Sequence record: PQ464595.1
DNA: 64,000 nucleotides
Strand: one strand, 5' to 3'
Shown here: piece by piece, positions 6,867 to 29,759 of the stretch
Layout of the letters: each line of letters opens with the position of its first letter
How positions within the stretch are numbered: the stretch's first letter is position 1
Made by a program: the position numbers and the translations under genes
Notes under the pieces: generated by a model
Databases searched by the model: none
The model's input: the letters and a program-made list of their open reading frames with translations, nothing else
Told to the model about the DNA's origin: nothing

Positions 6867-8672
6867 TTAGCTTCCGTGTTTGATTCTTTGTATAACTTCT
6901 TGTTGTTTACCAGTATTGAAAGGTCTACTATTCGGAGCACTAAGATAACCAGATACTCTACGAATAACTGACATAGTACCTTCTTCTCGGTTATCACATT
7001 GTGGACAATGGAAACCAACTTTATCTACCGAAAATTCACCTTCAAATTCACACTTATAACACTTATCGACTGGTTGGTTAATTCCAAAATATGGAATACG
7101 CTCATACGCATAATCGATCAGTACTTCTAAGGCTTTTAAATTGTTAGAAAGATTCGGAGTCTCAACATAACTGATGTTTCCACCATTGCTCAAGTACGCA
7201 AAACTTTCTTCATAATCAAACTTCCTGAAAGGAGATGATTCAATCCATACTGGTTGGTGGAATGAATTTGTTATGAAATCTCTTTTTAGTACATTTGGAT
7301 ATTTTTCTTCTATTGCTTTCGCAAATTTATAACATAAGCTCTCTGCTGGTGTACCATATAAACTAAATGCGATAGTACTTTCATCTTTGAACTGTTCACA
7401 TTTGTATTTCATATAGTGCAAGATGGATTTACAATAATCCTTACTTAACTGTTGTAGCATAATTTCAGAACATTCAGCTAGTCCAACATATCCAATACTG
7501 ATACTCGCATATCCATCATAGAATAACTGGTCAATTGTATCATCAGCATTTAAACGAGCAATAGCACCTTCCATAAACATAGTAGGGTTCTGTCGAGCTT
7601 TCATTGTTTTCAATCGTTCTACACGATTCATTTGTGCTCGATAAGCCATTGTCATGTGATAATCCAATTTACCGAAGAATTCACCATCGGATTTAGATTC
7701 AAGAGCAAGTAATGGAAGATTAATAGACACTACGCCTAAGTTAAATCTACCATCATATTGTTCAGTACCGTTATGTTCCCATTTACCAAGGAATGAACGA
7801 CAACCCATAGGCGATACAGCCATAGAAGTACTGCCAGTTACTTTCTTATTCAATGGTACTGATACGAAGTCTGGATAAATGCGTTTAGCACTGGTTTTCA
7901 TCGCTTGCTGTTTAAGGTCATAATTAGGATCAGACTCTTTCATATTCACCCCATCTTCTAGGAAGAAGACAACTTTAGGAAATACTGGAGTACTGCCATC
8001 TACACCTAAACCTTTCTCATGTACTTTTAAGTACGAATCGGTAATCATCTTACCGAATTTAGAGGTGTTTAGACCCATTGTAATCGTAACAAAGGGGGTT
8101 TGACCGTTACTGCTTGTGATGGTATTAACCTGGTACAGAAGTGCTTGCATAGCGTCGTACACCTCTTTCTGGAGTGTCTTCTGTACGTATTCATCCGGTA
8201 GACCGAATTCTTTTTGTTGCTCTAGGAGCTTGTTATAGGACTTCTGAACGTATGGTTCTAGACCGAAGTCAATATGTGCTAGTGTTTGACCACCGTATTG
8301 ACTTGCTGAAACTGCTAGTACTATTTGTGTCAGTACTGTACTTGCTACCCCAATACTATTAGGTGTACCAACTTGTGCGTTTCCAATCTTGAAACCGTTC
8401 TCCAACATGTCTCTGTAATTAACTAAACAACAGTTAGTCAAAGGGCTTATGAAGTAATCAAGATCATGTATATGTCCATATCCGTTCTTGTGCCAAAGCA
8501 TAAGTTCTTCTGAGATTTCATCCTCAGCGAAATGCTTAGATAAAATACCTGCTAGTAAGTCACGATGCGTGTTTACAATCTTCGCATCCTTATTAGCATT
8601 CTCATTCATTATATCTTTATTACTTTGGTTTATTAGTGCGGATACATCATTATACAGTCTGTCGTTATTCAT
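6867..8672 (-). CDS. nrdD: Anaerobic (class III) ribonucleoside-triphosphate reductase, no ATP cone
   Basis: HIHDLDY, LTNCC, SPMGCRSFL, RFNLGVVSINLP, YGTPAESLC, Zn CxxC..CxxC, RRVSGYL glycyl-radical motif. Confidence 0.97.
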   Translation of the reverse strand: MNNDRLYNDVSALINQSNKDIMNENANKDAKIVNTHRDLLAGILSKHFAEDEISEELMLWHKNGYGHIHDLDYFISPLTNCCLVNYRDMLENGFKIGNAQVGTPNSIGVASTVLTQIVLAVSASQYGGQTLAHIDFGLEPYVQKSYNKLLEQQKEFGLPDEYVQKTLQKEVYDAMQALLYQVNTITSSNGQTPFVTITMGLNTSKFGKMITDSYLKVHEKGLGVDGSTPVFPKVVFFLEDGVNMKESDPNYDLKQQAMKTSAKRIYPDFVSVPLNKKVTGSTSMAVSPMGCRSFLGKWEHNGTEQYDGRFNLGVVSINLPLLALESKSDGEFFGKLDYHMTMAYRAQMNRVERLKTMKARQNPTMFMEGAIARLNADDTIDQLFYDGYASISIGYVGLAECSEIMLQQLSKDYCKSILHYMKYKCEQFKDESTIAFSLYGTPAESLCYKFAKAIEEKYPNVLKRDFITNSFHQPVWIESSPFRKFDYEESFAYLSNGGNISYVETPNLSNNLKALEVLIDYAYERIPYFGINQPVDKCYKCEFEGEFSVDKVGFHCPQCDNREEGTMSVIRRVSGYLSAPNSRPFNTGKQQEVIQRIKHGS

Positions 8673-8717
8673 TAGACACTCCTTGTCAAATTGTTAGGTA
8701 GTTTATTTAAACCACTT

Positions 8718-8750
8718 AAAAATAAAATACCCCATACTAAGGGGTATTTT
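8718..8750 (-). terminator. Rho-independent terminator
   Basis: AAAATACCCC/GGGGTATTTT stem with U-tract. Confidence 0.75.
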
Positions 8751-8901
8751 CTTTGATCTAGATCAATGTTTTAGCACTTTGGTTAACGTTTGTTCAGGAA
8801 GCTACAGAAGTCCAAAATAACAAATATTACTAAAGCTCCAATGGAACTTAAGGCAATAACATAGAACCAAAACATAATCATTAAGAAAGTATAAAGCATT
8901 T

Positions 8902-9459
8902 TTAGACCCCTTTAGCCTCGAAGCCGTACTTTTCGCTCAGTACTTCAAGGATACGAATTGGCATTTCTTCATGAGTATATTCACGCATGTCAATGAATGG
9001 AATATTCATTTCTTCCAAATTGCGAACAAAGATAGCATCAATTTCTTTTGCCTGTTCCAGAGTCTGTGTGCGACCGTACTGATCATATTCTGGTTTACGT
9101 GGGAGCAGGAATACAACATTCTCATATTGATTATATAGCTCTAACGCAATTTCAGAACTTATATTATCAACATCATCATAGAATTCATTGTACATGATAC
9201 CATTCAGTAGTGAAGCATCAGATACGACAAAATCCACCTTTCCGTTTAAACGGAATAGGCGGTGATTTTGTTGAGCAGTAATTAGAACCTGGTCTTGCAT
9301 TGCCATTTTGTTTTCATCATAAACATAGTCTTTGATTACTTCAGTGACAATCTCAACTTTCTGTTTTGACTTTAGTTTTAGTGCTGCGAATAGACCAGCA
9401 GCAGTTGTTGATTTACCGCAGCACGGTCCACCAACAAGATTAATAACAACAGTATTCAT
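8902..9459 (-). CDS. P-loop kinase/ATPase of AAA_28 (NadR-like) type
   Basis: VINLVGGPCCGKST Walker A, VVSDASLL, YDQYGRTQTLEQA; start trimmed to MNTVVIN. Confidence 0.75.
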   Translation of the reverse strand: MNTVVINLVGGPCCGKSTTAAGLFAALKLKSKQKVEIVTEVIKDYVYDENKMAMQDQVLITAQQNHRLFRLNGKVDFVVSDASLLNGIMYNEFYDDVDNISSEIALELYNQYENVVFLLPRKPEYDQYGRTQTLEQAKEIDAIFVRNLEEMNIPFIDMREYTHEEMPIRILEVLSEKYGFEAKGV

Positions 9460-23547: not shown

Positions 23548-24044
23548 ACTAAAACCTCAATGTTATTATAATCGAATTTGATATATTTTGATTTTCCATT
23601 TTGAGAATATACCATATGTATATTATTTCCATCAGTATTAACTGATAGAACTCGGAAAGCACCAGATATTTTTTTACGAAGAGATTTAGATGGTTTAAAT
23701 TTCCAGGTTATACGCTGGGTATCACGATTAAATTCAATAACAGTACTGTACAAATTATTAGCTGCTAAGTTACCATGATTTTTACGTTCACTTTTTATAA
23801 AGCCAACAAAATCATGATATTCAAGATGTTGATTATGTAAAAACTCTTTTTTGAAGATTTTACTAGACCAGAATACACAATATGAAAGATGTGTATTACC
23901 AAAAATATCTTGGTATTTTTTCATCAATCCATCAACTTTTGGATTATCAAACCACATGTTTGCTAAAGCACAAGTGTTTCTTGAATAAAACTCTATAATA
24001 TTCATATGTGTTTCTCTCAATAAATTAAAAAGAAGGGAGAGCAA
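23544..24044 (-). CDS. Hypothetical protein (true start probably MNIIEF)
   Basis: ORF track. Confidence 0.65.
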   Translation of the reverse strand: MLSLLFNLLRETHMNIIEFYSRNTCALANMWFDNPKVDGLMKKYQDIFGNTHLSYCVFWSSKIFKKEFLHNQHLEYHDFVGFIKSERKNHGNLAANNLYSTVIEFNRDTQRITWKFKPSKSLRKKISGAFRVLSVNTDGNNIHMVYSQNGKSKYIKFDYNNIEVLV

Positions 24045-24055
24045 TTGCTCTCCCT
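24027..24055 (-). terminator. Terminator after NAMPT
   Basis: AGGGAGAGC/GCTCTCCCT stem + U-tract. Confidence 0.8.
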
Positions 24056-24060
24056 AAGTA

Positions 24061-25575
24061 TTACAAACCTTTGTTCGCACGTTCACGGACTTCATCGAAG
24101 TTACTGAGATTGAAAATCTCACCGTTAATGTACATATCAACCATCATATCTTTAAGGAAGTGGTTGATTTCCTGAAGCTCAATGCGTTCAGCAATGATCT
24201 TGTGGGAATTTGTACACTCATAAGTGGTCACACGACCGCGAAGTGAACGTTTACCCACATCAGTAATTGGGTCTTTGAACAGATCTTCCCAAGTACCATC
24301 AGCCAATTGCTGAGCAGAACCTTTCATTGCGAATGAATAGGTATCGCGACCTTTTTCTGGATGAACCAGTTTACCACCCATACCGAACACAAGGTTCTCA
24401 ATGGAGTAGTTCTTAGCTTCCAGGTTCGCAACGATTTGGCGAATGCTGTCTTCGTTGATACCATCACCCTGAATTACGCCGATGAAACTTGGAAGTACTT
24501 TAAAGCCATTAGCATTCACAGTAGTTCCGAATTTGTCTGCCAGAATATCCAGGATCTCAATTGGCATAGTAGTAGCATCACCACTATCTGGACGCATGAC
24601 GAGACGAGCACCAGGGCAACGTGCCGCGATTTCAAGGATCATCTCTTTCAGACGAGTGCCAATGAATTCACGAACGAAGCGGTAAGCATCATACGTATCA
24701 ATTACTACTGAAACGATTGGTGGAACACCAACTGAACCTTTAGCAAGGTACGCATTAACTTTTTTCTCCCACAGGCGAACCATTTTCAAAGCCATATTAA
24801 AATCGTCGCGTTTGTCTGCGTCAGAGTTAGAGCAAGTAGCACTATGCTCAGAAGCAGTTACGGAACTCAGATATGCTTTATCAGTGTGGAAGTACTTTTT
24901 AATGTAACGGTTCGCAGACAGACAATCAGAACCACTGAAGATCATTGCGTGAGACATACCCGCCAGAATCGCTGATTCATAGCTGGAAGCACCGCGATCA
25001 CCGAAGTTGTGAAGATGGTAGTCCACGAAGCGATGCCCCGCATGACGTTCCATAGTGTCTGCCAAAAACTCTTTAATGCTACGTGCATTACTTGCTACAG
25101 TAGTAGGGAACCACACAGCACGTTGTAACTGAGTCTCGATATAACTTGCGATAACGCAAACACGAGGATCAGTACTGAAAGAACGTACCAGAGGGCAACC
25201 AACCGGAACTACAGTACCTTCAGGAACAGCACGGATATGTACCGGAATTTTACCGCCGTGTACTTCCAGAATATGTTCCCAAAAACCGCGATCAAAATCA
25301 TCGCCACGTTGTTCGGTTTCAAGTTCTGCTTCATCAATATCTTCAATTGTGATAGTGATGTTCAAGTACTTCTGAATGTAGTATTGAAGACCAGCCATTA
25401 CAACATGCGTTGCGTATTTTGATGGTTTACGAGCGATGATGTTACTTTCAAGAGCTACTACGCCCTCTTTCATCATGAAGCCGTGACCAGTTTTATACGA
25501 GTCAACGTTGAGGATAAAGTTTACGTTATCAGAGAAATCAATAACGTCATTAAAAGTTTTGTTAGTAATAGTCAT
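24061..25575 (-). CDS. nadV: Nicotinamide phosphoribosyltransferase
   Basis: ILNVDSYKTGH, LHNFGDRG, ASEHS, VVIDTYD, MRPDSGD, IQGDGIN, VFGMGG, KDPITD. Confidence 0.95.
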   Translation of the reverse strand: MTITNKTFNDVIDFSDNVNFILNVDSYKTGHGFMMKEGVVALESNIIARKPSKYATHVVMAGLQYYIQKYLNITITIEDIDEAELETEQRGDDFDRGFWEHILEVHGGKIPVHIRAVPEGTVVPVGCPLVRSFSTDPRVCVIASYIETQLQRAVWFPTTVASNARSIKEFLADTMERHAGHRFVDYHLHNFGDRGASSYESAILAGMSHAMIFSGSDCLSANRYIKKYFHTDKAYLSSVTASEHSATCSNSDADKRDDFNMALKMVRLWEKKVNAYLAKGSVGVPPIVSVVIDTYDAYRFVREFIGTRLKEMILEIAARCPGARLVMRPDSGDATTMPIEILDILADKFGTTVNANGFKVLPSFIGVIQGDGINEDSIRQIVANLEAKNYSIENLVFGMGGKLVHPEKGRDTYSFAMKGSAQQLADGTWEDLFKDPITDVGKRSLRGRVTTYECTNSHKIIAERIELQEINHFLKDMMVDMYINGEIFNLSNFDEVRERANKGL

Positions 25576-25626
25576 ATCTAAGACTCCCTTAGTTATTAAG
25601 TTTAAGTGAAAGCTACAACGCTTTCA
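25576..25626 (-). promoter_or_regulatory. Conserved structured 5' leader, copy 1 (riboswitch-like), before NAMPT
   Basis: TGAAAGC-GTTGTA-GCTTTCA ... ATAACTAAGGGAGTCTTAGA-T-ATG. Confidence 0.65.
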
Positions 25627-25635
25627 TTATTTGGT

Positions 25636-26154
25636 TTATACCAAATGCTGTAGTAAATTTAATGGTATTTTAGCCATCAAATTATTGGGTTCAAACATAT
25701 TAGAATTCAACCTAATATACGAACGAATGTCATACGGATTGTTGTACAGGTTCAACGCAATTGCGTCAAGTGAAAACTCGTATTCATCACCATATTCATC
25801 AGATTCTCGGTAATGAATTGTACCATCATTCTGTACTATTATGTCCGATATGCCACGCGATACGAATAGATTTCCCCTATCTATCTGACCAAAGTACGTT
25901 TGTGCCATTCGATCACCCTTATGCGGCTCTAGGCCATTATTTGTGCCATAAGTTCGTAGTGCGAATACACGGTTCGTTTCTTCAGTTTCCGGTTCACTCA
26001 GAACCATCTTAATTAGATATTGAATAGGGTCAATATATTCAATCTTATCAGGTATTTGGTATTCTGTCAAGCAGATTTTTTTGATAAAACTTTCACGATT
26101 GTCAGAGATGTACTTCATCTCATTGTAAAAGCGTTCAGGTTGACAAAATAACAT
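25636..26154 (-). CDS. Hypothetical protein between the two NAD salvage genes
   Basis: ORF track; SD GAGG. Confidence 0.7.
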   Translation of the reverse strand: MLFCQPERFYNEMKYISDNRESFIKKICLTEYQIPDKIEYIDPIQYLIKMVLSEPETEETNRVFALRTYGTNNGLEPHKGDRMAQTYFGQIDRGNLFVSRGISDIIVQNDGTIHYRESDEYGDEYEFSLDAIALNLYNNPYDIRSYIRLNSNMFEPNNLMAKIPLNLLQHLV

Positions 26155-26169
26155 AACATCCTCTCAATT

Positions 26170-26194
26170 AAAATGGAGTACCTTTCAGTACTCC
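26170..26194 (-). terminator. Terminator after NadM-Nudix
   Basis: GGAGTAC/GTACTCC stem + U-tract. Confidence 0.7.
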
Positions 26195-26201
26195 AAAACT
26201 C

Positions 26202-27329
26202 TTACAAAATGCCAAGGAAAGTATCAATGATACTCAAATGGTCTTCAAAGAATTTATCACGGTTCTTGACCAACTCACCAAGCGGCATCCAGAATGCTTT
26301 TTCAGCATCATCAGAACCTTTTACTTTTGGTAAAGTATTGTCCTGAAGCTGGATATGAGCACAGCGAGTAATGATACGCCAACGAAGTGAACGGTTGAAA
26401 TCACCGAATTCCATACTTTCACGGATTGAACCTTCCAGTACTTTCATCGGAACATCAATCTTCGTTTCTTCTTTGAGTTCACGAAGTGCCGTTTGAACCT
26501 GATCTTTGTCTTGCCATGCGTCGAAGAACCCGCCAGGAAGTGCGTATAAACCTTTACCTGGGAAAGTACGACGCTTAACCAACAGTACGTGTCCAGCACA
26601 AATTACCAGAGCATCACCCGTCAGGAACGGAATGTTGTCATATGGCAGTTTTTCTTTCATCTCTGAACGATAACGTTGTACGAAGTTGAATTCGCCGATC
26701 AGGTTATCGAACACCATTGGTTTGGTCTTCATGAACTTCTCAAGAAACTCTTTAGTTTCTTCCGGCAATTCTTCTGGTACTTGTTTAGTACTGAAAAACT
26801 GCTGGCGAACAGCGGTACTGTTAAATGTTACTTTTACAGTAATATCGCGATGTTCAACATAATCTTTATGATTATAGTCATCTGACACAGTTTTGGTTAC
26901 AGTTTGTTCTGGAATAAAATCCTGATTCCACTGCGGGAAGAAGTTCAGGTAGAAAGTACTTGCGTCAGCTTCTTTCTGACAACCAGTAATGAAAATGTTT
27001 TCACTCTGAGTTACAGATTGAACTTGCTCGTGTACTTCCATCAGCCATTTGCTGTTGTTATATACGTAGTCGTGGATTGGAAGGATGTTAACCTTCACTG
27101 AACGCCCTTTAGCCCATTCTGCTTGTGCTAAACGACTAGACATAGCATCCAGTACTTGCTTGCGTTCATCGAACGTGAACGGATTCTTTGAATCACGTGC
27201 CATGTCGGAAGAACCAACCAGGATTACCAAACGGTCTGAATTTTCTAATGCGTGTTTAATGGTAGCTTCATGACCAGCATGTGCCATTTGGAAACGACCA
27301 ATATATACATAAACTTTTTCGTTTTTCAT
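26202..27329 (-). CDS. nadM: Bifunctional NMN adenylyltransferase / ADP-ribose Nudix hydrolase (NadM-Nudix, NatV-like)
   Basis: YIGRFQMAHAGH, KNPFTFDER, FNSTAVR, ALPGGF..ALRELKEET, GSDDAEKAFW; start trimmed to MKNEKV. Confidence 0.95.
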   Translation of the reverse strand: MKNEKVYVYIGRFQMAHAGHEATIKHALENSDRLVILVGSSDMARDSKNPFTFDERKQVLDAMSSRLAQAEWAKGRSVKVNILPIHDYVYNNSKWLMEVHEQVQSVTQSENIFITGCQKEADASTFYLNFFPQWNQDFIPEQTVTKTVSDDYNHKDYVEHRDITVKVTFNSTAVRQQFFSTKQVPEELPEETKEFLEKFMKTKPMVFDNLIGEFNFVQRYRSEMKEKLPYDNIPFLTGDALVICAGHVLLVKRRTFPGKGLYALPGGFFDAWQDKDQVQTALRELKEETKIDVPMKVLEGSIRESMEFGDFNRSLRWRIITRCAHIQLQDNTLPKVKGSDDAEKAFWMPLGELVKNRDKFFEDHLSIIDTFLGIL

Positions 27330-27376
27330 TTCTAAGACTCCCTTAGTCATTATTGAAACAAGGCTACAACGCCTTG
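27330..27376 (-). promoter_or_regulatory. Conserved structured 5' leader, copy 2, before NadM-Nudix
   Basis: CAAGGC-GTTGTA-GCCTTG ... ATGACTAAGGGAGTCTTAGA-A-ATG; begins at the predicted transcription start. Confidence 0.65.
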
Positions 27377-27384
27377 ATGTGTAC

Positions 27385-27414
27385 ATTATAGCATAAAAGT
27401 CAACGGCGTTCCAA
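27385..27414 (-). promoter_or_regulatory. Early promoter TTGGAACG-N-TGCTATAAT
   Basis: Motif shared with 17699..17728. Confidence 0.7.
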
Positions 27415-27449
27415 GTTTTTTTGGTTCGTTGAGTTGCTAGAACAGTGAA

Positions 27450-27478
27450 ATATTAGCAAATTGCGTCCTGGTCGTCAA
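27450..27478 (-). promoter_or_regulatory. Sigma70-like promoter TTGACG-17-TAATAT
   Basis: Reverse complement of atattagcaaattgcgtcctggtcgtcaa. Confidence 0.55.
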
Positions 27479-27580
27479 GCACTTTTTGTGGTTCAAAAGT
27501 AAATATTAATAGCAATAGCTAGTTTTCGGTATCTTAATAAATACTGAATATAATTATATAACTTTCTTAGGAGACTAAAA

Positions 27581-28486
27581 ATGGGAAAACCAATTGCTGG
27601 TCGTAATAAATCCCCATTCGGTGTTGACGGTATCAATGTAGATGCTGCTGTTCTATCCGATGGTACACAATTGACTAATGTTCGCATTAGCAAACAACGT
27701 TCCATCAACGTATTTGATCTAATCAGTGCTGATGGTGCGACACTTTATCCATTCGTAAAAATCACAGGTGTTGACGCAACTGGTGCAAACCTTTCTGTTG
27801 CTGATGATGCTGCTACCCTAGCTGGTAAACTAGCTAATGGTTCATTCTGTATCAGTATTGTTGATACCGCTGGTGATGTTGTTGGATTTGCTATCCGTCT
27901 ACTACTAAACAAAGTAGTTCTACAAGATGGTTCAGTACAATTCTTAACAGATTACACTGGTCAAGGTGAATTAACTGTAGCGGTAACAGGTGTTACTGTT
28001 GCTCCAAGTACTCTAGCAGTACTAGTTGGTGGTACTAGTACTCTAACCGCAACAATCGCTCCAGTTAACGCAACTAACAAAAATGTTACTTGGGTATCTG
28101 GTACTCCAGGTGTTGCTACTGTAAGTTCTGCTGGTCTAGTTACCGGTGTTGCTAATGGTACTTCAACTGTAGTTGCTACTTCTGTTGATGGTTCATTCAC
28201 ATCATCTTCCGTTGTAACTGTTACTACCGCCGTAACTGGTGTTACTCTTGCTCCAGCAACTGTAACTCTAAGCCTAGCTGGAACTACTACACAACAACTA
28301 ACACCAACTATCGCACCTGCTACCGCAAGTAACCAAGCTGTTACTTACATTTCAAGTGCTCCTGGTGTAGCAACTGTTAGTGCTTCAGGTCTAGTAACTG
28401 CTGTAGCTGTAGGTACTGCTACTATCACTGTAACAACAACTGATGGTTCACACACTGCGACTTCTGCTATCACAGTAAACGCATAA
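27581..28486 (+). CDS. Virion protein with two C-terminal Ig-like (Big_2) domains
   Basis: VTGVTVAPSTL...VTWVSGTPGVATVSSAGLVTGVANGT repeated twice; AATAAATA late-type motif and SD AGGAG upstream. Confidence 0.85.
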   Translation: MGKPIAGRNKSPFGVDGINVDAAVLSDGTQLTNVRISKQRSINVFDLISADGATLYPFVKITGVDATGANLSVADDAATLAGKLANGSFCISIVDTAGDVVGFAIRLLLNKVVLQDGSVQFLTDYTGQGELTVAVTGVTVAPSTLAVLVGGTSTLTATIAPVNATNKNVTWVSGTPGVATVSSAGLVTGVANGTSTVVATSVDGSFTSSSVVTVTTAVTGVTLAPATVTLSLAGTTTQQLTPTIAPATASNQAVTYISSAPGVATVSASGLVTAVAVGTATITVTTTDGSHTATSAITVNA

Positions 28487-29278: not shown

Positions 29279-29759
29279 AATCTAATCCAATTCCTTTTGC
29301 TACTTCAATTGTTTCATTGTGATATGCGACCAGTTCTTGATAGTAGATTACATCTTTTTCTTCTATCTTGAATGGGCGGTCTGCGTATTTACTCCAACGC
29401 TCAAATGTCTTTTCGAGGTCTTCTTTCTTTTCGTAAAAGTACTCGTCGGTATGGTCTTCTACAATACATTCAGCTTTAGTGTATGGAGTCATTAATTTCA
29501 ATACAAAGAATGAATTATAGCTTTCCCAAATCCTACCACCAATCAATTCACATTCTTCTTTGTAAAGAAGTTTACCTAAGAAGTTTGAACGATACTTCGC
29601 TTGATATTCGTTCAACATAATAATATGTCGATCTTTGGATTTTTCAACAAGTAATTCGTTTAAATCAATTACTTTTTTAAGGTTATTAATCCATACATGA
29701 GTATTTCGTTCAGTTAGTTCTTTATACAGCATTCTTAGCCTCGTAATATTCTTTAGCAC
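29235..29759 (-). CDS. Hypothetical protein, paralog of 29722..30300
   Basis: KYADRPFKIEEKDV. Confidence 0.7.
   Translation of the reverse strand: MLKNITRLRMLYKELTERNTHVWINNLKKVIDLNELLVEKSKDRHIIMLNEYQAKYRSNFLGKLLYKEECELIGGRIWESYNSFFVLKLMTPYTKAECIVEDHTDEYFYEKKEDLEKTFERWSKYADRPFKIEEKDVIYYQELVAYHNETIEVAKGIGLDYEAFNLDEYRENRG

Follow-up and report, generated by a model that had tools for sequence, protein, structure and literature searches.

A two-hairpin RNA leader at the translation starts of both NAD+ salvage genes of Erwinia phage Kaldavass, and its relation to a leader family on viral NAD genes

What kind of element precedes both nicotinamide adenine dinucleotide (NAD) salvage genes of Erwinia phage Kaldavass, and what could it do there? 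The 64-kb stretch analysed here (hereafter the window) forms the end of the Kaldavass record PQ464595.1 (366,556 bp). On its minus strand, on which all features described below lie unless stated otherwise, it encodes nicotinamide phosphoribosyltransferase (NAMPT; 504 aa, 24061..25575, Pfam NAPRTase and NAMPT_N, PF04095 and PF18127) and NadM-Nudix (375 aa, 26202..27329, a GenBank coding sequence), a cytidylyltransferase-Nudix fusion (Pfam CTP_transf_like and NUDIX) that combines a nicotinamide mononucleotide (NMN) adenylyltransferase with an ADP-ribose (ADPR) pyrophosphatase. Together, NAMPT and NMN adenylyltransferase make up NARP2, a pathway by which phages rebuild NAD+ and overcome the Thoeris and DSR2 defences; NARP2 over-produces NAD+ and consumes phosphoribosyl pyrophosphate (PRPP), and the NARP2 operon of phage KVP40 is toxic in E. 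coli (bioRxiv 10.1101/2024.02.11.579819). Kaldavass is a Rak2/GAP32-like jumbo phage, related to Xanthomonas phage XbC2, Cronobacter phage GAP32, Pectobacterium phage CBB, Serratia phage BF, Yersinia phage fHe-Yen9-04, Salmonella phage Munch and Klebsiella phage RaK2. An initial annotation of the window had proposed that a hairpin-pseudoknot leader, possibly a riboswitch, precedes both genes. On balance, we favour the reading that this leader is a cis-acting RNA working on translation initiation of the NARP2 enzymes.

By reading the minus strand upstream of the two genes, we found one and the same element before the NAMPT ATG and before the NadM-Nudix ATG. From 5' to 3', both copies consist of a stable hairpin with the loop GUUGUA (hairpin 1), an A/U-rich linker, the exact 17-mer ACUAAGGGAGUCUUAGA and the AUG, and the 17-mer forms a weak hairpin with the Shine-Dalgarno sequence (SD) in its loop. 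In copy 2, in front of NadM-Nudix, hairpin 1 (CAAGGC-GUUGUA-GCCUUG, 27359..27376; stem 27376-27371 and 27364-27359, loop 27370-27365) would form the 5' end of the transcript, and is followed by a single-stranded linker of 12 nt, UUUCAAUAAUGA (27347..27358), and by the SD hairpin CUAAG-GGAGU-CUUAG (27346-27332), the dinucleotide AA and the AUG at 27329-27327 (together 27327..27346). In copy 1, in front of NAMPT, hairpin 1 (UGAAAGC-GUUGUA-GCUUUCA, 25607..25626; stem 25626-25620 and 25613-25607, loop 25619-25614) is followed by the 14-nt linker CUUAAACUUAAUAA (25593..25606) and by the same SD hairpin (25592-25578), the dinucleotide AU and the AUG at 25575-25573 (together 25573..25592). Thus, the loop GUUGUA closed by stems that covary between the copies, as first described, is present in the sequence, while the linkers are longer than the 8-10 nt then reported. 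Hairpin 1 folds at -9.3 kcal/mol (z -5.0) in copy 2 and at -8.8 kcal/mol (z -4.9) in copy 1, and the SD hairpin folded alone is weak (-3.3 kcal/mol).

Where do the corresponding transcripts begin? A promoter scan placed a sigma-70-type promoter for the NadM-Nudix transcript at 27385..27414 (10/12 matches with TG), made of a -35 box TTGGAA (27414-27409), the TG (27393-27392) and a -10 box TATAAT (27390-27385) with a spacer of 18. Because this promoter ends at 27385, transcription is predicted to start at about 27378, some 2 nt 5' of the copy 2 hairpin, which agrees with the earlier suggestion that copy 2 begins at the transcription start. The sequence TGnTATAAT stands at the same place in GAP32, CBB, BF, Munch and RaK2. 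The open reading frame (ORF) listing puts the start of NadM-Nudix at an upstream ATG (27386) within the -10 box; since the conserved leader fixes the start and 27386 lies inside that box, the true start is 27329. The GenBank coding sequence for NadM in XbC2 (L002 3702-4769) likewise has its annotated start misplaced, 60 nt too far downstream. For the NAMPT transcript, a possible extended -10 box, TGgTATAAA (25635..25643), overlaps the stop codon of the upstream gene and is kept as TGGTATAA(A/C/G) in GAP32, CBB, Yen9-04 and the contigs L017 and L024; this candidate was read by eye and has no -35 box, hence it was not scored by the promoter scan.

By searching the window for the 17-mer (ACTAAGGGAGTCTTAGA), we found exactly two matches even at 3 mismatches, where the chance expectation at up to 3 mismatches is 0.18, so that the claim that the element occurs nowhere else in the window holds. 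The 61-nt element occupies two places only in the whole 366-kb Kaldavass record, and complete Rak2-like genomes carry two copies each, all at NAD genes. A simpler hairpin stands before a divergent gene for a Big_2-domain "major tail protein" (ATG 27581), where CTTAGGAGACTAAAA precedes the ATG (27566-27583, plus strand) and forms a 4-bp stem with the SD in the loop (UUAG-GAGA-CUAA), similar to an arm-swapped version found in the RaK2 NadM leader. In Kaldavass, an SD held in a hairpin loop is therefore no mark of the NAD genes alone; NAD specificity in this phage lies in the composite element and in how it is conserved, and the SD hairpin by itself does not have it.

Is this structure kept by selection on RNA? 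Both leaders were found in every Rak2-like relative examined. The stem of hairpin 1 varies among them by compensating substitutions (GAAAGC, CAAGGC, CAAGGU, CAAAGC, GCCGAU, AGAGAAC and others), and across 17 distinct leaders of the clade 97% of cells are paired and 6 of the 7 pairs have changed on both sides, a level of covariation that was reached by none of 500 shuffles. The loop reads G-N-N-G-U-A in the clade, with positions 2 and 3 variable (UU, AA, AU, UA), and the linker differs in length and in sequence. The SD hairpin is invariant save in two cases: Munch-like phages have CUAAG-GAGUA-CUUAG, and the RaK2 NadM leader has its arms swapped (CUUAG-GGAGUA-CUAAG), a compensatory change. This strong covariation bears out the proposal of a real, selected RNA structure at both NAD-gene translation starts.

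The pseudoknot fared differently. The initial annotation had noted that the loop GUUGU can pair with a downstream AURAC, and had built an H-type pseudoknot on it. The pairing is indeed possible in both Kaldavass copies, the 3' end of the copy 2 linker being the AUGA of the proposed partner. However, in the alignment of 17 Rak2-clade leaders 76.5% of the cells are paired versus 75.3 +/- 1.9% in shuffled alignments, and 248 of 500 shuffles were as high as the observed value. A double change occurs at one pair only among these clade members, and loop position 2 has changed from U to A in 8 of the sequences and is compensated in 2; in a tally of 19 leaders it has changed in 10, again with compensation in 2. 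Over those 19, the pairing is complete in 6 and 72 of 95 cells are paired overall, and it is broken in GAP32, CBB, BF and RaK2. Since the pairing stays at the shuffled level and the loop changes are mostly uncompensated, the pseudoknot appears possible in Kaldavass and is without comparative support. A loop-to-downstream pseudoknot considered for the main class of the wider family described below (loop G-AUAGA-C) was rejected as unconvincing, as its 5-nt complementarity (61/91 versus 40 in shuffles) falls on U-runs or on the near-palindromic UAU. Likewise, a search for an alternative, anti-sequestor partner of the SD-hairpin arms found none conserved (36/81 versus 35.9 in shuffles). With no alternative pairing for these arms, the sequences point to a leader with one static fold.

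How far does the element reach beyond the Rak2-like phages? Short BLAST searches with the Kaldavass leader also matched NAD genes in unrelated phages. Identical copies of CUAAGGGAGUCUUAG followed by AUG stand before NadM and NAMPT of Ochrobactrum phage OC (Kyanoviridae), whose first hairpin is different (loop GGGGU), and before the NMN adenylyltransferase gene of Vibrio phage 2.275.O and RaK2 NAMPT; pnuC of phage OC is without a leader of its own. The 15-nt SD hairpin is shared with the NAD genes of phage OC, 2.275.O and the contig L026, whose proteins are 34-54% identical to those of Kaldavass. By scanning IMG/VR for the exact pattern CTAAGGGAGTCTTAG-N0-4-ATG, we found 27 matches, 26 of which lie directly before NadM or NAMPT; one of these 26 is in a different contig, L026 (172 kb).

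A survey from the gene side gave the same picture. Of 80 viral loci encoding relatives of NadM (most of them 36-42% identical), nearly all have the same architecture before NadM or before a small ORF heading its operon: a sigma-70-type promoter, hairpin 1, a linker of 8-14 nt, a hairpin of 5-7 bp and the AUG 0-3 nt further on. The commonest hairpin 1 loop is an invariant G-AUAGA-C, the loop of the second hairpin being GGAGU or GGAUU, and NAMPT in the same loci has its own copy of the leader in a distinct subtype (AAGUCC...GGCA, second loop GGAAC or GGAGC). Most matches of an unbiased scan for GATAGAC-N12-28-AAGGATTTT were due to chance, but about 24 were genuine, and each of these with enough downstream DNA has NadM and/or NAMPT on its own strand at a distance of 0-4 kb. 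The contig L166 (IMGVR_UViG_3300020045_011377, 7118-9401, minus strand) carries three copies, before NadA, NadM and NAMPT; its NadA is a quinolinate synthase (Pfam E 1e-83), and this phage has a gene of de novo NAD biosynthesis under the same leader. In total, the two-hairpin leader was found before NadM, NAMPT, NadA and small co-operonic ORFs in more than 100 unrelated viral contigs.

R1, a covariance model trained on 35 seeds (match threshold E < 0.01), gave 107 matches in 92 loci, with 107/107 on the strand of the NAD gene. Over 95 distinct sequences, 84.8% of the cells are paired versus 56.7% in shuffles, and 370 cells have changed on both sides. At the two outer pairs of the SD hairpin, UA, AU, GC and CG all occur, with practically no unpaired cells, and the distance from loop to AUG is tight (36-44 nt). 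When the hairpin reaches right up to the start codon, the (U/C)AU before it pairs with AUG in 27-33 of the 35 seeds, so that the start codon is held in the stem too. The link to NAD genes and the covariation thus hold in very distant phages and in some bacteria, which was the check across phage genomes that the initial annotation had called for. Since this link spans distant phages and bacteria with strong covariation, a simple local duplication of a strong ribosome-binding site (RBS) is ruled out.

The same data bear on the reading of the element as DNA, either as an operator palindrome for an NrtR/NadR-like repressor or as the intrinsic terminator of the upstream gene. In bacteria, repressors that bind DNA often control NAD genes, the two hairpins also read as inverted repeats at the DNA level, and copy 1 lies 9 nt past the upstream stop codon. 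But the stems keep complementarity and not sequence, which is covariation of the RNA type, and the element is strand-specific, as given above, at a fixed distance to SD and AUG. An intrinsic terminator was rejected on its own grounds: what comes after hairpin 1 is CUUAAAC or UUUCAAU and not a U-tract, and the terminator scan flags other hairpins on the minus strand. The DNA-level reading appears largely refuted by the covariation pattern, and we regard it as exceedingly improbable.

Do the Kaldavass leaders themselves belong to this family? They and the leaders of the Rak2-like clade are without the family loop G-AUAGA-C and have Y-G(W)(W)GUA-G instead. Both Kaldavass copies have the family architecture, that is a 5' hairpin, an 8-14 nt linker, the SD in a 5-nt loop and the AUG 0-3 nt later, and both lie directly before an NAD salvage gene, as in the family. 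With a broader model (R2), built from the 107 R1 matches with Rak2-clade sequences excluded except for the bridging contig L026, the NAMPT leader (25573-25631) scored highest of the whole window, with 19.2 bits (E 0.03), and the NadM leader took third place, with 13.8 bits (E 0.67); the two are aligned in the correct register. The second-best match (29578-29627, plus strand, 16.5 bits, E 0.15), a CGAUA...CG hairpin followed by an ATG, lies on the strand opposite to the local genes and is probably due to chance. The contig L026 bridges the two forms, having a GAUAGAC first hairpin together with the exact Kaldavass SD hairpin. Because R2 aligns both copies in register and L026 combines both forms, we take the Kaldavass leaders as a putative divergent variant (loop GUUGUA) of a widespread leader family, with borderline statistical support.

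Among cultured phages, the main form is carried by Synechococcus phage B23 and Roseobacter phage DSS3P8, for example, in each at both genes. Cultured carriers surfaced via the NadM protein, and BLAST searches of main-class leaders against GenBank phages gave no match. In the Aeromonas phage Aeh1 and in RB43 the SD hairpin is kept and nothing else of the leader. The layout is also shared by some bacterial nadM(-Nudix) genes (L229-L247: Caulobacter, Erythrobacter, Xenophilus, Variovorax and others), all on alpha- and betaproteobacterial contigs, at loci that may be chromosomal or may stem from prophages. In Caulobacter zeae, nadM has the loop GAUAGAC and the SD hairpin UGAG-GGAGU-CUCA; in Erythrobacter and other alphaproteobacteria the loop is GGAGU or GGAGA and the second hairpin UCGAG-GGAGU-CUCGA; in Comamonadaceae they are ACGGA and UGGG-GGAUU-CCCA. 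These bacterial versions carry GGA(G) in both loops. Clade by clade, the hairpin 1 loops are GUUGUA, AUAGA, AGAGA/AGUGA, GGAGU/GGAGA, GGGGU and ACGGA, with G at position 4 throughout.

This distribution of loops suggests a binding partner, because the hairpin 1 loop is invariant within a clade and different between clades while the stems covary freely. A protein-operated translational operator, in which a phage or host RNA-binding protein would read the hairpin 1 loop and/or the GGA of the SD loop to repress or activate translation, would account for it. A clade-invariant loop on freely covarying stems is the classic signature of protein recognition, and loops that shift between clades are expected with a co-evolving protein. 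Moreover, the element sits on several genes of one locus, as in a regulon, with one static fold. Targets of T4 gp32, gp43 and RegA and operators of MS2-type coat proteins are conserved-loop hairpins by or over the SD/AUG, CsrA/RsmA sites show GGA in a hairpin loop, and CsrA is a two-site binder, which the GGA(G) in both bacterial loops recalls. The leader resembles these operators in its conserved loop, free stems, position at the SD/AUG and GGA in the loop; it differs from them in that the loop sequences do not match, that its regulon is NAD-specific and that no binding protein is predicted. Indeed, no candidate protein emerged, the enzymes themselves being the only proteins always present. 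The small co-operonic ORFs come from several unrelated families, and the 172-aa protein encoded between the two Kaldavass genes has no homologue in B23 and is unrelated to B23 gp47. A single host factor is also unlikely, since the hosts span cyanobacteria and alpha-, beta- and gammaproteobacteria. We therefore hold an operator of this kind to be unlikely, if well worth keeping in mind.

Could the leader instead sense a metabolite directly? As a riboswitch, it would bind NAD+, NMN, ADPR, nicotinamide or PRPP, and access to the SD would change when a defence depletes NAD+. Several features fit this idea: the association with NAD genes is strict in many lineages, with separate copies on nadA, nadM and NAMPT; covariation is strong, and the main class has an invariant G-AUAGA-C loop and tight spacing; the position over the SD resembles that of known translational riboswitches; and the cost of NARP2 provides a regulatory rationale in a niche that no Rfam family occupies. 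However, the SD aside, no nucleotide is universally conserved, the hairpin 1 loop varies between clades despite the same pathway, and the linker is free in sequence and length. Furthermore, the pseudoknot is without covariation, the complementarity of the main-class loop is weak and of low complexity, there is no conserved alternative pairing, and very little conserved unpaired sequence is left to make a pocket. Taken together, a metabolite riboswitch seems to us distinctly unlikely.

Membership of a known class, NAD+-I and NAD+-II included, was not borne out. Rfam searches gave no match at gathering score anywhere in the window, nothing in the region 25500-27600 with E allowed up to 10, and nothing in ten related family loci with E up to 1, so that the nadA-linked copies do not match the NAD+-I model either; since no Rfam 15 family matches even at these permissive thresholds, the leader is neither an NAD+-I nor an NAD+-II riboswitch. 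The NAD+-II riboswitch (pnuC motif) belongs to pnuC of Streptococcus and has a consensus of its own; in it, a hairpin is followed by a tail over the RBS that controls translation initiation (PMC7749635). The Kaldavass leader resembles it in this arrangement, and resembles both the nadA (NAD+-I) and pnuC motifs in being a small cis-acting leader on genes of NAD metabolism. In contrast, its family lies on nadM, NAMPT and nadA of phages and proteobacteria and not on pnuC of Streptococcus, has other conserved nucleotides and gives no support to a pseudoknot. The preQ1-I type is an H-type pseudoknot with a conserved loop and an A-rich tail; the leader shares its size (~50 nt) and proximity to the SD, but here two independent hairpins are supported and a pseudoknot is not. 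In the literature searched, we found no paper that contains the 15-mer or the 17-mer, nor any in which phage NAMPT or nadM is connected with a riboswitch or another RNA motif, and the leader family is apparently undescribed.

If either a metabolite or a protein responsive to NAD or ADPR were to operate the leader, the family would be a new class of NAD-pathway sensor that switches on NARP2 at NAD+ depletion. We put this broader proposal forward tentatively, as doubtful but deserving attention, and are just as reserved about extending it to nadM in some proteobacteria.

The nearest described phage feature is the PeSL cassette of T4-like phages. As generic modules, PeSLs recur many times in one genome, within its hyperplastic regions, and their stems resemble terminators, for example A3-4G3-loop-C3T3-4 (PMC4122927). 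Like them, the leader combines an early sigma-70-like promoter with a conserved stem-loop in large myoviruses, next to accessory genes or ORFans (PMC2839356, PMC4122927); this pairing of promoter and stem-loop is present at copy 2 (promoter 27414-27385, hairpin at 27376), with a putative extended -10 box at copy 1. The leader could accordingly be a generic mobile cassette, or be co-inherited with a transferred gene cassette, and have no NAD-specific function. Each copy comes with its own promoter, unrelated small ORFs of the NAD locus share the leader as if cassettes shuffled genes, T4-like phages do use promoter/stem-loop cassettes (PMC4122927), and the NadM-type and NAMPT-type leaders are separate subtypes, as if each travelled with its gene. 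But PeSLs are multi-copy and terminator-like, whereas the leader has no U-tract, has a second hairpin that holds the SD and is limited to NAD loci (2 in 366 kb, 2 per complete relative, and the ~24 unbiased matches). In addition, compensatory change has kept the structure while the proteins fell to 35-40% identity, which requires selection on the RNA. A cassette devoid of NAD-specific function is thus very improbable, and even taken jointly with a DNA-level element it stays well within the improbable.

What do these observations say about function? The position of the leader at the 5' end and at the SD/AUG, the selection on its two helices and its specificity for strand and NAD locus are established. 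For the favoured reading, translation control by a cis-acting RNA, we propose the following sequence of events. Each copy would be the 5' leader of an mRNA for one NARP2 enzyme, NAMPT or NadM-Nudix, and would act in cis. The 5' hairpin would protect and insulate the transcript end, and the leader probably also affects the 5'-end stability of NARP2 mRNAs. The linker may offer the 30S subunit a standby site on which to land, and the marginally stable SD hairpin, with a strong SD (AAGGGAG) in its loop, would gate initiation. In the ribosome standby model a structured SD is flanked by a single-stranded landing pad, and the leader is similar in that a weak SD hairpin follows an unstructured A/U/C-rich segment between two helices; unlike the leader family, standby is a general mechanism and explains neither the conserved hairpin 1 loop nor the NAD specificity. 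Combined, these parts could give both enzymes the same capped translation rate whatever their sequence context. A capped output is plausible because NARP2 over-produces NAD+ and consumes PRPP, and because the KVP40 operon is toxic in E. coli. Finally, the SD hairpin may be stabilised or opened by a partner, most likely a protein, that co-evolves with the hairpin 1 loop and binds it.

Some points weigh against this reading. First, translational control is deduced from position and structure. Second, the SD hairpin is weak and absent from the minimum-energy fold of the NAMPT leader. Third, SD-in-loop hairpins stand at other Kaldavass genes too, with about 14 loose matches in the window. Fourth, R1 gave no correctly aligned match to the Kaldavass copies, and their R2 scores of 19.2 and 13.8 bits are borderline. 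Fifth, a purely constitutive role explains neither the clade-invariant hairpin 1 loops nor the confinement to NAD loci.

The genes around the leaders were also examined. Between NadM-Nudix and NAMPT lies the gene for the 172-aa protein (25636..26154; phrog_25832, a PHROG of unknown function), which has no Pfam match, an ordinary RBS and no leader. The terminator scan found terminator-like hairpins 3' of NadM-Nudix (UGGAGUACUGAAAGGUACUCCA followed by UUUUAAU, 26174..26195), kept in GAP32, CBB and BF, and 3' of NAMPT (AGGGAGAGCAAUUGCUCUCCCU followed by UCUUUUU, 24034..24055). As such hairpins stand 3' of both genes, they suggest that NadM is transcribed largely alone and that NAMPT closes a transcription unit. 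In relatives, genes for a Sir2-like protein and for a Nudix hydrolase follow NAMPT on its strand at a distance of 2-3 kb, both without the leader (L005/L006 834-1625, L004 1-395, L023 5586-6877); the NAD genes therefore lie within a larger NAD/ADP-ribose neighbourhood.

In the wider leader family, some NAD operons begin, just upstream of NadM, with a leader-bearing gene for a small protein (105-125 aa) from one of at least four unrelated families, or for a member of a 213-aa family (L040, L043, L062, L070, L071, L094, L098, L037, L152). Conserved motifs in them include HNHTDGCGW in one family and GEDPNCDxGG in another. These small co-operonic ORFs matched no Pfam family, and their PHROG matches are all of unknown function; they may be further counter-defence or NAD-related genes. 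Another conserved RBS box, ACATTTCGGAGTTGAAGA-ATG, precedes many small ORFs of the same metagenomic phages (L062-L104, at many positions, e.g. L094 5207, 6026 and 6778) and is unrelated to the NAD leader.

NARP2 rebuilds the NAD+ destroyed by Thoeris, DSR, SIR2-HerA and similar defences, and the leader offers a concrete handle on its regulation in phages. The family comprises more than 100 distinct sequences over jumbo phages, cyanophages, roseophages and some bacterial nadM genes. At about 50 nt, the leader is short enough for direct biochemistry, and cultured systems are at hand (Kaldavass/Erwinia aphidicola, GAP32, DSS3P8/Ruegeria pomeroyi and B23/Synechococcus). If constitutive, it would be a portable, context-insulated module for translation initiation of practical use. 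If it senses a ligand or a protein, it would represent a new class of NAD-linked RNA regulator, and, if the sensor proposal is true, a phage anti-defence pathway would for the first time be known to be under a sensory RNA.

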